A stretch of DNA of 64,000 nucleotides, taken from Monocercomonoides exilis PA203. Lineage: Eukaryota; Protista; Preaxostyla. The stretch spans positions 744,001 through 808,000 of the forward strand of contig LSRY02000021.1 in NCBI GenBank assembly GCA_001643675.2, written 5' to 3'. Under the pieces are notes generated by a model. It was given only the letters and a program-made list of their open reading frames with translations. It was not told the origin of the DNA and searched no databases. Shown in pieces: positions 3,001 to 24,572 of the stretch (within the stretch, counting starts at the first letter, position 1; every line of letters begins with the position of its first letter). The position numbers and the translations under genes were made by a program.

Positions 3001-6000
3001 TGAAGAAGAGCAACTTCAGCGAGGTGAACAGGACAGAAGGAAACGGAGGAGCGGTTGTGGGAGAGGTGGACAGCGAAAAGCGCATTGAGATCAAGGAATG
3101 CAACTTTGCCAAGGTTATGTGCTATCATACAGGAACAAAAGGAGGAAGCATGCTTATTTCGGTGGCGAAAAGAGGAACGTTTCTGTTTGAGAAGAACTGT
3201 GTGAATGAAAGCAGGGTGCCGGGGATTGACGGGCTGGGAGGGGGTCTGCACTTGACGTTTTCAGATGTGGACTTGACGTATTCGATGAAGTTGGATGAAT
3301 TCAACAACAATGATGCGCTGCTGGGGAAGGATGTGTATCTTGTGTGCACGCTTCCGCGGAGGATGATCAACCCGTTGCTCTGGAGCGGGTCTGCGAAAGA
3401 TGGGAGCGAGTATGAAAAGACGATGTGGGTGCTGGATCCGAGCGATGCAGAAATGAACATGTCGCTTTTGAGGTTTTTGTTTCCGTCTGTCGACGATATT
3501 GTGTTTGTTGACGACGGGCTGGGGCAGGTTGAAGCGGGATGCGGAAGCAGCGTCAAGCCTTGCAAGGAATTGAGTTTTGGGTTCACGCAGTTGGGAACAG
3601 AAAAGAACATTCTGCACATCACATCATTGGCAAAGCTGGAAGGGGAAATCAAGCAGAATCTTTCGTCGCTGACGATCAGAGGGGAATCTGTAAAATCAGA
3701 CATGATTGTGGATGGTGGCGGGTGCATATGCGTGAGCGACGGAGACTTGTCGACTCAGCTGACCATGCAGAATATCCGCTTTGCTTTTGCCACAAGCGCT
3801 GAGAGCCCGCAAGACGCGCTGATTGTTGGGAAAGTGGGGAGCATATTCCTGATTTCGTGTGATGTCTCAAAAAGTGCAGATGCTCAAATCTCCAACATAA
3901 AGCAGAGCATCTTGTGTGGAAAGGGAAGCACGATAACTCTGACTTCTGTGATATTTTCAGAGCTGGCGTTTGAAGCGGATCAAGCGATCTGTGTGATGCA
4001 GTCTGGTTCCTTGATTATCAGTGGCTGCACTTTTGCATCAATAAGCACAAGCAAGAAAAGTCTGATTGGAGGGATGGAAGGAACATGCATTGCAATCAAC
4101 AACACTCAAATCAGCGAATGCTCGTCAGAGTTTGGAAGTGTTGCGCACTGGGAAAATGCGTTGGAGGTTGAGATCGTAAATACCTCGTCATTTGCGAATT
4201 GCTCTTCAGAAAAAGACAACGGCGGGGCAGTTAATTTGATTTTCTCGAAGAATTACAGACTTACGATTGCTGATGTTTCGTTCAGCAACAACTCGGCAGA
4301 CGAAGAAGCGAAAAACGGAGGAGCCATTTTCGTGCAACTGAGCCAAGATCTGGATGAAGCAATTGAATTCTCATCGTTGCATTTCCTTGGAAACAAAGCA
4401 CATCATGGCAAAGACATGTTTGTTGCATGTGCCGATCTGAATCGAACAGTCCTGCAATCAAGGTTTCAGTTTCCTTTGGTGAATGAGGAAGGCAAATTGA
4501 TTGTTGATTTATTTGGAAGAGACGAAGCGATCACAAACAAGGAAGCAGTCAACCTGACACTGTTTTTGTTGAAGCTGCAATCCTCGAGCATTCATGTGTC
4601 TGCTGCAGGGCATGATTATTTGGGGTGTGGGAGCGACGAGTATCCGTGCAACACCTTCTGGAGAGGATATATGAACATGGACAAGACGGGATCAGATCAA
4701 AAGCTTTTGACTGTGGATGCTTCGACAGTTGTGCAAAACACCTACGATGTAAGCTCGTTTTCTATCATCCCGGGATATGGAAGCGCCCGATCGACGATTG
4801 TCGTGAAGAGTGACCTGGAGTTGTGCACTTTGGATTCCATATTTTTGAGTGCAAAAAGTCTGTCCATTCAAAACATGTTGCTTTCTATTCCAACTTCGTT
4901 TACTCCGCCTGTTAATAATCTGCTGAGATTAAATCCGCTCAGCACTTTGGAAACTCAGTTGGCAGTGAAGGGCTGTGTGTTTGAGTGTTCATCTGGATCT
5001 TGCATTGATTACATCTTGATTTCGTCTGCGAAAGGGCGAGTGGAATTGTCAGACTGCACTTTGCCATCTTTCTCGTCTGGTGTGATTCCACTCGATTTGT
5101 CTTCTTCTGTTCTGATCAATGGAATGAACTTCACCAACATTGTGTCTGCATCCAGTGGCGAAGGTGGAGTTGCGAGGGTGGAGCTGAAAGAAGAAGAATC
5201 GCTGAGTATTAACGGAACGAAGGCAGAGGGATGCTCGTGTGCAGGAAATGGAAGAGGGGGAGCATTCTTTGTGAAGTGTTCAGAATCTCTGCTGCCCGCA
5301 CCTTTTGTTTTTGGAAGCGAAATAATTCTGGCAGATAATGAAGCCATGATTGGGAAGAACGTATTTGTTGCGTCGAGCGACCTGAATCGAACAGTCACAA
5401 AGAGCACTTTTGCGTTTCTTGCTGAAAAAGCCAAGACAGATTGCACACTCTTCTGTGGAAGTGACGCAGTGCATCGCGATACCGATCTTTTGCGGTTTTT
5501 GTGTGGGTACAAGGACAATGCGATTTTTGTCTCTTCGAATGGGTTCGACATTGCCAGATGTGGAAGTGAAGATGATCCGTGTGAATCGTTCTGGAAAGGG
5601 ATGGTGCAAATAGAGCGTTCTTCTCAATCAAAGGTAATAACAGTTGATGATTCGACTTTTGTGCGTGATGCATTTATTGTATCGAATTACACAATAGTTT
5701 CATATTCAGCATCGCCTGACGAAGCGAGAAAGGCTGTTGTCGAGTTCCAGAACAAAACAATCAACGATGGAGAGCCGTTTCTGACCAATTCTGTGAGGTT
5801 GGCGCTGGAGAGGTTGAGACTTAGAATTGCAGAACATTTTGATGGCTAGGCGAGCTCCATTGTTCACAGCAAGGAAGGCATCCTTCTTGTGAAGATGTGC
5901 TCGTTTGAATCGAAAGGGCTGATGGAGGATTTGAGCAAAGTGCGGTTTGTGACAGTCGAAGGAGGAGAGCTGGCTGTTGATGATCTGACAATAAGCTCCT

Positions 6001-22918: not shown

Positions 22919-24103
22919 TCATTCGAACCCTCTAATTCCTCCAACCTCTTCCTTTGGTTTCAATCCTTCATCGCCTTCCGGTGCAATATCTTTCGCATCC
23001 TCATATTCTTCACTCTCCTCTTCATCGTTGTCTTCGTTCCCTCCGTTGTAATCGCTGTCATTGTCACCGTCTCCTCCCTCGTCGCTGCTGTCATCATCGC
23101 TTATTTCATAAGCAATTTGCGATTTCTTCCTTTTTCTGGGTCCAGTTACTTCCTCTTTAATAATAACATCCGCTTCTGATGAATTTTCTTTTTCATCTTC
23201 TTCATCGTCGTCAGCAACCATCCGCTCTTTGTGTTTAGTGCTCTTTCGAAGAGTTACTTGCTTCTTTTCCCTCTTCATTGCTCTGTTTAAGCGCCTTCTC
23301 TCATTTCTTCTTTTTCGTTTACGTTCAAGTGCATCTTCATCTTCAAGATATCCAAAATCGCCAAAAGAAGAAGAGGAAACATTGGATCCAAATCCTGTGG
23401 ATTTCAACCAAGATGGTACCGAAGAAGCGAATTTTTCTTTAGGGATCTTGTTTAATGCAAATAGAGGTGACAAATCAGATTCTTTATTTGCAGTTATTTC
23501 CTTCTTTGTTTCAGAAATTTTTTCATTATCACTTCTTTCATTCAATGAAATCTGAAATGATGGTATCGACCTGTAAACATTTGGCAGCTTCAATTTTTTC
23601 TCTCCGCGTTCATTGAAAACATCTGTACTTTGATCAATCGGGCGCTTCGTTCCTTTCATAACAAATGAATAAGGCTTTGAATGAAACGTAAATGAAACGC
23701 CACCATGGTGTTCTGAATTACACATATAATTTGAAGTTAATGTGTTTTTTTGAAGTAATTTATCATTTGTATCAGAAGCTATTTTTTCATCCGATGAAGA
23801 TTTAACTTTTTTTCGAAAAATTTGTTCTTTCCATCTTGTCATAATGGTGGTCGCATTCTTCACGATTATAGGATGGAAAGACATAGATACTGGATTTTTT
23901 GAAACAAATGCATCAACTTCAGGTGCGTTTGAAGTTGGTATTTTAAGTAATCTTGATCCGTATTTTTTTAAATTCGAACTTCGTTTTGCAACACCTCTCT
24001 CAATGTTAATCAGTTCTTTGTAATCTCCTAAAGATGATATAAGTTGTTGAGGATTTAAAAATGCTTTCACATATTTATTTTTTGGGGCGGATTTGAAATC
24101 CAT
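22919..24103 (-). CDS. Hypothetical 394-aa protein, probably nuclear (basic NLS-like stretch, acidic tail)
   Basis: Long ORF with ATG; RKRKRRNERRR and PRKRKK segments; no recognised domain. Confidence 0.65.
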   Translation of the reverse strand: MDFKSAPKNKYVKAFLNPQQLISSLGDYKELINIERGVAKRSSNLKKYGSRLLKIPTSNAPEVDAFVSKNPVSMSFHPIIVKNATTIMTRWKEQIFRKKVKSSSDEKIASDTNDKLLQKNTLTSNYMCNSEHHGGVSFTFHSKPYSFVMKGTKRPIDQSTDVFNERGEKKLKLPNVYRSIPSFQISLNERSDNEKISETKKEITANKESDLSPLFALNKIPKEKFASSVPSWLKSTGFGSNVSSSSFGDFGYLEDEDALERKRKRRNERRRLNRAMKREKKQVTLRKSTKHKERMVADDDEEDEKENSSEADVIIKEEVTGPRKRKKSQIAYEISDDDSSDEGGDGDNDSDYNGGNEDNDEEESEEYEDAKDIAPEGDEGLKPKEEVGGIRGFE

Positions 24104-24155
24104 TAATTAATTATTTATTCAAAATTCCGCTGTACGCTTGCAAGATCAAGAAAAA

Positions 24156-24572
24156 ATGGAACGTGTGCTATTTTGATGTTAATTTTAATAATTAAAGAAT
24201 CTTTTGAATTTCATTTATACTTTATCTTTTTTTCTATGATTATCTTAACGAATATTTGCGATTAACAATTGCCATCTGATGATATTTTATTATTTAGCTG
24301 AATACGAATATTTCGATCTTCTCCGTCTCCGTGGAGGAGGGAAAAAGCACAAGAAGAAGGTTTACACCACACCAAAAAAAATTAAGCATAAGAAGAAGAA
24401 GGTTAAGCTTGCCGTGTTGAAATACTACAAGATCCGTGATGACGGAAGCATTATTCACACCCGTCCAGAATGCAAGAACTGCGGTGCTGGTGTGTTCATG
24501 GCACAACATGAAAACCGTGTTACTTGCGGAAAATGCGGACTCACATACGCCACAGCAAAGCCAAAAGCATAA
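24156..24572 (+). CDS. RPS27A: 40S ribosomal protein S27a (eS31) with vestigial ubiquitin leader; exons 24156-24162 and 24298-24572
   Basis: [30 protein letters not shown] and C4 zinc finger [18 protein letters not shown], preceded by LRLRGG. Confidence 0.95.

Follow-up and report, generated by a model that had tools for sequence, protein, structure and literature searches.

Whether a eukaryote can dispense with the ubiquitin fold on the ribosomal protein eS31 (RPS27A), and what then becomes of the sequence left in its place, are the questions raised by one of the two eS31 genes of Monocercomonoides exilis. Reviews call the fusion of ubiquitin to eS31 universal among model eukaryotes (PMC8122580, PMC6332867), and describe ubiquitin sequences on eS31 that have drifted but still keep the fold (PMC8122580, PMC10457151). 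The gene discussed here occupies nucleotides 24156-24572 of the plus strand of the window, the whole 64,000-nucleotide stretch of contig LSRY02000021.1 that was analysed.

The collapsed eS31 gene and its paralog

The initial annotation had divided this locus into a 7-nt exon 1, a 135-nt intron and exon 2. The sequence reads so, and the spliced product is identical to a 93-amino acid protein already in the public databases, MONOS_5184 (KAH7823977.1; P0121). The region has the following features.

24156-24162, plus strand: exon 1, 7 nt (ATGGAAC), consisting of the start codon (24156-24158), a Glu codon and the first base of codon 3.
24163-24297, plus strand: spliceosomal GT-AG intron, phase 1, 135 nt (GTGTGC...TTTAG), 21% G+C.
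24298-24572, plus strand: exon 2, with the stop codon TAA at 24570-24572.
24298-24338, plus strand: remainder, after exon 1, of the ubiquitin vestige, aligned with ubiquitin residues 61-76; LRLRGG is encoded by 24321-24338.
24339-24572, plus strand: eS31 proper, with the basic N-terminal extension from GKKH, the zinc ribbon and the Pfam match (24414-24545).
22919-24103, minus strand: divergent neighbour ORF, 394 amino acids, which bounds the space upstream of the eS31 gene.
24104-24155, no strand assigned: intergenic stretch, 52 bp, which must house the shared promoter region and a short 5′ UTR.

The frame is free of stop codons from nucleotide 24300, and its translation gives 13 leader residues ending in LRLRGG followed by a typical eS31. 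With the contribution of exon 1 the full leader has 16 residues, and its LRLRGG end abuts the eS31 N-terminus, GKKH, directly. The product of exon 2 scored 77.3 bits with the Pfam family Ribosomal_S27 (PF01599), for which the cut-off is 22.3, and in the genome scan the score was 78.6 bits. Both the four-Cys zinc ribbon (Cys 61, 64, 79 and 82) and the K-rich N-terminal stretch are invariant in alignments A4 and A5. The β-grasp domain of ubiquitin or of a ubiquitin-like protein (Ubl), which takes up about 76 residues, is absent from the eS31 product, the leader having only 16. An AlphaFold2 model of P0121 was of low confidence in the leader (pLDDT about 57) and is uninformative on its structure. 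The GTGTGC donor of the eS31 intron is also used by the intron of the M. exilis genes encoding the ubiquitin-eL40 fusion (Ub-eL40).

A divergent start at 24103, leaving 52 bp, had been proposed, and the ORF at 22919-24103 confirms it. This neighbour ORF had no significant Pfam match; its C-terminal part is acidic and rich in Ser, Asp and Glu. The motif ATTCCG(C/T), which may be a promoter or initiator element, was read by eye 26 to 34 nt 5′ of the ATG of each M. exilis eS31 gene, as ATTCCGC at 24124-24130 of the window and at nucleotides 1129-1135 and 1075-1081 of the locus containing the other gene (L001). When the window region was scanned with Rfam together with six related loci, no relevant match was obtained.

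The other gene, located on contig 5 (L001; product P0001, MONOS_12978), begins with ATGGAAA; its intron, again phase 1 with a GTGTGC donor, has 210 nt, and its leader of 16 residues ends in MRLRGG. The paralogs differ in 47 of 91 codons, with 44 synonymous and 3 replacement changes. All three replacements fall in the leader but none in RLRGG, while the codons of the tail show four synonymous changes, a result that agrees with the earlier proposal that the tail is under selection. The 77-residue eS31 body, on the other hand, is identical at the protein level despite about 40 synonymous differences. When the leader alone was considered, dN was 0.18 and dS 1.8. No alignment was obtained between the introns and flanks of the two paralogs, so the copies are old and their silent sites saturated. 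The leader changes faster than eS31 and yet is clearly constrained at the protein level by purifying selection.

As the genome has two copies, the one in the window could be a decaying or silent duplicate, with the working eS31 being made elsewhere. The genome scan, however, found only these two eS31 genes and no third copy in the assembly, and both bear the short leader. Added to the identity of the eS31 bodies in the face of so many synonymous differences, this makes a silent duplicate extremely unlikely.

Distribution and conservation of the short leader

Homology searches were carried out using exon 2 or the identical public protein P0121 as query. Five short proteins were found at the top of the protein searches, and below them mostly ordinary Ub-eS31 fusions as well as scattered short entries that, wherever opened, proved to be gene-model artefacts or fragments. 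The relatives that share the short leader are Streblomastix strix (P0002, L027), Blattamonas nauphoetae (P0005, L028) and two metagenomic kinds (P0003 on L029; P0122 on L030 and L031). Their loci include a 7-nt exon 1 (ATG plus four bases), a phase-1 intron of 66 to 214 nt and a leader of 16 or 17 residues; no synteny was found between the metagenomic contigs and M. exilis. A profile search recovered in addition Paratrimastix pyriformis (P0273, L049), a free-living organism outside the oxymonads, in which exon 1 is ATGCAAATCG and the phase-1 intron has 205 nt. The Paratrimastix leader consists of 20 residues, starting with MQI, the start of ubiquitin, and ending in IRLDGG, so that the two ends of ubiquitin are preserved and the part between them is missing. 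The first nine bases of this gene are those of the M. exilis Ub-eL40 genes.

The leader is a true remnant of ubiquitin, as indicated by MQI in Paratrimastix and by a junction that stands before GKK(H/R)KKK exactly as in the Ub-eS31 fusions. The comparison of leaders across Preaxostyla that the initial annotation had suggested finds the short eS31 leader clade-wide and the M. exilis Ub-eL40 canonical. It also removes the concern about a local misassembly or deletion, since the paralog, Streblomastix, Blattamonas, the metagenomic relatives and Paratrimastix share the structure. The short leader is a trait of the clade comprising Paratrimastix and the oxymonads rather than a local accident, and the data point to an internal collapse of the Ub-eS31 gene that predates the split between them.

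Four other candidates for a short eS31, taken from a 50%-identity protein library, were rejected. In the case of P0268 a ubiquitin exon lies upstream; P0233 was called from a GTG start downstream of a divergent Ubl ORF; P0198, a Tara transcript, looks like a 5′-truncated divergent Ubl; and P0288, which is Paratrimastix-like, is a euglenid protein with a full Ubl. The same library includes P0255 (87 amino acids), an eS31 that starts with MGGKKHKKK, lacks a leader and has His-His and Pro-Leu-Ala features as in Paratrimastix. P0255 may come from a relative in which reduction has gone still further, or the call may be truncated.

The Streblomastix eS31 gene has an in-frame TAG and an in-frame TAA (L027, 3145-3147 and 3211-3213) where the public protein has Gln, in agreement with the known variant code of this organism. 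The first intron of the eS31 genes of Blattamonas and both metagenomic relatives contains a conserved block, GAGTGATGACGGGAC followed by GAATT (L028, about 3098-3128; L029, about 111-141; L031, about 140-170; L030, about 543-573). A looser version is found in the M. exilis contig-5 copy (L001, about 1274-1296), and the block is absent from the window copy. A TGATGA within it resembles a C box, but a D box is not consistently present and Rfam gave no match.

Many short eS31 entries in the databases are gene-model artefacts of the type represented by P0268 and P0233, and the M. exilis gene would be one more if a full ubiquitin exon were located further upstream, or were added by trans-splicing, with the mini-exon remaining unused. 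A six-frame scan of the whole assembly (82.3 Mb, 101 contigs) with the ubiquitin profile PF00240 gave 133 matches, none of them in the window or near the contig-5 paralog. The nearest ones on contig 16 are about 590 kb and about 410 kb away from the window eS31 gene, and for hundreds of kb around both M. exilis copies the scan gave no match. When M. exilis ubiquitin was compared by tblastn, at very loose thresholds, with the upstream DNA and introns of all eS31 loci, only the leader itself was found. These searches uphold the claim that there is neither room nor an exon for a 76-amino acid ubiquitin upstream or in the intron, as well as the claim that the fold was lost, the PF00240 domain being absent from the product and from the surrounding DNA. 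Moreover, seven loci from at least five organisms have ATG plus 4 to 7 nt, then GT, in phase with the acceptor; the divergent gene starts only 52 bp upstream of the ATG; and the public M. exilis annotation was polished with ONT cDNA (PMC8767320). An artefact is therefore very improbable, and as far as the sequence goes the evidence says that no ubiquitin exon for eS31 is hidden elsewhere.

A split ubiquitin, in which genomic matches to ubiquitin positions 1-59 would complement the leader, was also considered and rejected. One such match, when opened, was the first exon of a Rad23-like Ubl (L040, 297-485), with an end equivalent to ubiquitin residue 62. Several further genomic ubiquitin matches end at model position 57-60, and these ends may reflect an intron position common among Ubl-domain genes.

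All eight leaders compared (alignments A4 and A5) have Arg72, Leu73 and Gly75, in the numbering of ubiquitin, without exception. Position 74 is R, V, H or D, and the two metagenomic kinds, which have RLHGA, differ from the other six leaders in having Ala instead of Gly at position 76. The idea of a putative processing site kept under selection stands for the three invariant residues, but it has to be relaxed at residue 74 and in the lineage with GA in place of GG. The description of the leader as a stub that keeps only LRLRGG was correct for the tail and too restrictive for the rest, because the oxymonad leaders also share, N-terminal to the tail, an invariant Glu (aligned with ubiquitin Glu64) as well as an Asp and an aromatic pair; the Paratrimastix leader has Pro-Glu-Tyr in common with them as well. 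The codons for these conserved upstream residues differ between species, which indicates a constraint on the protein. In a junction census of 351 eS31 proteins, the L-x-G-G core was also kept where the Ubl had drifted, and Arg72 was usually lost there.

Possible fates of the leader

Considered as a whole, the observations may best be explained by a working eS31 gene with a collapsed ubiquitin whose leader is clipped after Gly-Gly, an explanation to which we assign about an even chance. The history of the gene is the part of this account that is shown: in the ancestor from which Paratrimastix and the oxymonads descend, the ubiquitin-coding part of the eS31 gene collapsed through an internal deletion, and left over were the first two to three codons of ubiquitin in a 7- to 10-nt exon, the phase-1 intron, and some 13 to 16 codons ending in R-L-x-G-G, fused directly to eS31. 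The fate of the leader is inferred. The short acidic, aromatic leader would be translated and act as a mini pro-peptide until a ubiquitin-tail-specific protease of the UCH or USP type clips it after Gly-Gly. Mature eS31 would then start with GKKH as in other eukaryotes, and its N-terminus would be freed in the A-site region of the ribosome.

The genome includes two canonical Ub-eL40 genes (full ubiquitin, junction LRLRGG, intron-free start region), canonical polyubiquitin arrays and at least 3 UCH genes, and the whole-genome scan for USP (PF00443) gave no fewer than 121 matches, so both the ubiquitin supply and the tail-specific proteases are plentiful. The USP matches together with the 133 ubiquitin-domain matches suggest a very large and unusual ubiquitin toolkit. 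Many of the USP matches are located inside uninterrupted open frames of 4,000 to 10,000 codons (e.g., C18:971861-973780 and C69:1943494-1944951).

The conserved LxGG pattern argues for cleavage of the leader, since the conserved residues are those that occupy the active-site cleft of deubiquitinases, LxGG with a free P3. The N-terminus of eS31 is found in the A-site region adjoining eIF1A, eRF1 and eEF2, and in yeast an uncleaved Ub-eS31 disturbs translation by interfering with initiation and elongation factors (PMC11274626). Against removal, cellular deubiquitinases need the body of ubiquitin, which they bind through an exosite; their turnover of LRGG tetrapeptides is very poor, and P1 must be Gly (PMC7477763). 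Peptides of this type without the fold are thus poor substrates of these enzymes. Also, the G-A-G junction of the RLHGA relatives resembles the one blamed for the lack of cleavage in Giardia (PMC8122580), and the residues conserved upstream of the tail would not be needed by a bare cleavage site. On balance we regard removal of the leader as roughly a matter of equal chances.

The same points can be read in favor of a leader that is not removed and forms a short acidic extension at the N-terminus of mature eS31, with the history of the gene unchanged. In Giardia the whole Ubl remains on eS31 without cleavage (PMC8122580), the second Gly is missing from the RLHGA lineage, and the upstream Glu, Asp and aromatic pair are conserved in the protein while their codons turn over. 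While eS31 is being made and imported, a retained leader might cover its poly-basic extension, and would in this way be a small-scale version of the chaperone function that has been suggested for ubiquitin. Retention leaves unexplained, however, why R-L-x-G-G, the residues of the protease cleft, is fixed from Paratrimastix to Monocercomonoides, and at the A-site end of eS31 the additional acidic peptide should hinder the binding of factors (PMC11274626). We consider retention plausible, although short of an even chance.

If the leader is instead clipped as in the preferred explanation, the freed 16-residue peptide ending in RLRGG could in principle be charged by E1 and conjugated, which would make it a micro-ubiquitin that has no fold and whose production follows that of ribosomes. 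This reading takes its support from Arg72, the discriminating residue for E1, which is invariant in the eight leaders and usually lost in divergent Ubl-eS31 proteins. In vitro, short ubiquitin-tail peptides can react with E1 (PMC6136576), which is no more than a lead. The fold needed for a ubiquitin-like modifier is absent from the leader, which places it outside that class, and we find such conjugation highly unlikely.

Significance and comparison with known systems

Full-text literature searches found no paper pairing S27a with oxymonads or Preaxostyla, nor one describing an eS31 that lacks its ubiquitin. The short eS31 proteins of M. exilis and its relatives had already been deposited publicly, with ordinary names. 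In nearly every other eukaryote eS31 is made with a complete ubiquitin domain, whereas Monocercomonoides and its relatives have a conserved leftover of 16 to 20 residues that ends in the cleavage motif. The clade, which has made ribosomes without the fold for a very long time, is a natural test of whether that fold is needed on eS31. It is also a natural system in which other questions become testable: whether the purpose of the ubiquitin on eS31 is that of a chaperone, a ubiquitin supply or a mere removable cap; whether R-L-x-G-G in linear form can be processed by a cellular protease when the body of ubiquitin is absent; and what minimum leader length supports eS31 production, with the RLHGA relatives as a built-in comparison. 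In addition, the short leader is a clean rare genomic change uniting Paratrimastix with the oxymonads.

The canonical fusion is represented by yeast Ubi3 and human RPS27A/UBA80. The M. exilis protein is like them in being the same ribosomal protein, in having Gly-Gly directly before the basic GKK..KKK, and in its LRLRGG tail. It differs in missing about 60 of the 76 residues of ubiquitin, so that the β-grasp cannot form, and the gene is unable to supply the cell with ubiquitin. In Giardia lamblia the Ubl of eS31 has, as Catic et al. (2007) are summarized in two reviews (PMC8122580, PMC10457151), lost the sequence of ubiquitin, kept the full fold and remained uncleaved. Both are metamonads in which the ubiquitin of eS31 has escaped conservation, and the G-A-G junction recurs in the RLHGA relatives, but the M. 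exilis clade lost the fold and kept the tail sequence. Coronavirus papain-like proteases and LRGG-AMC demonstrate that cleavage after L-x-G-G in a linear peptide is possible for an enzyme with the USP fold (PMC7477763), the pattern conserved in the leaders discussed here, although those are viral enzymes or artificial substrates and cellular deubiquitinases are very slow on such peptides. The FUBI-eS30 protein (FAU) of holozoans has a Gly-Gly-ended leader other than ubiquitin that must be removed by a USP (PMC8354635). It resembles the M. exilis protein as a ribosomal protein with an N-terminal leader ending in Gly-Gly, and differs from it in that FUBI is a complete ubiquitin-like domain. Archaeal eS31 has no ubiquitin domain, basic eukaryotic extension or Gly-Gly leader. 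The M. exilis form also lacks the ubiquitin domain, but it has the basic extension and the Gly-Gly leader, and it is secondarily reduced, not primitive.
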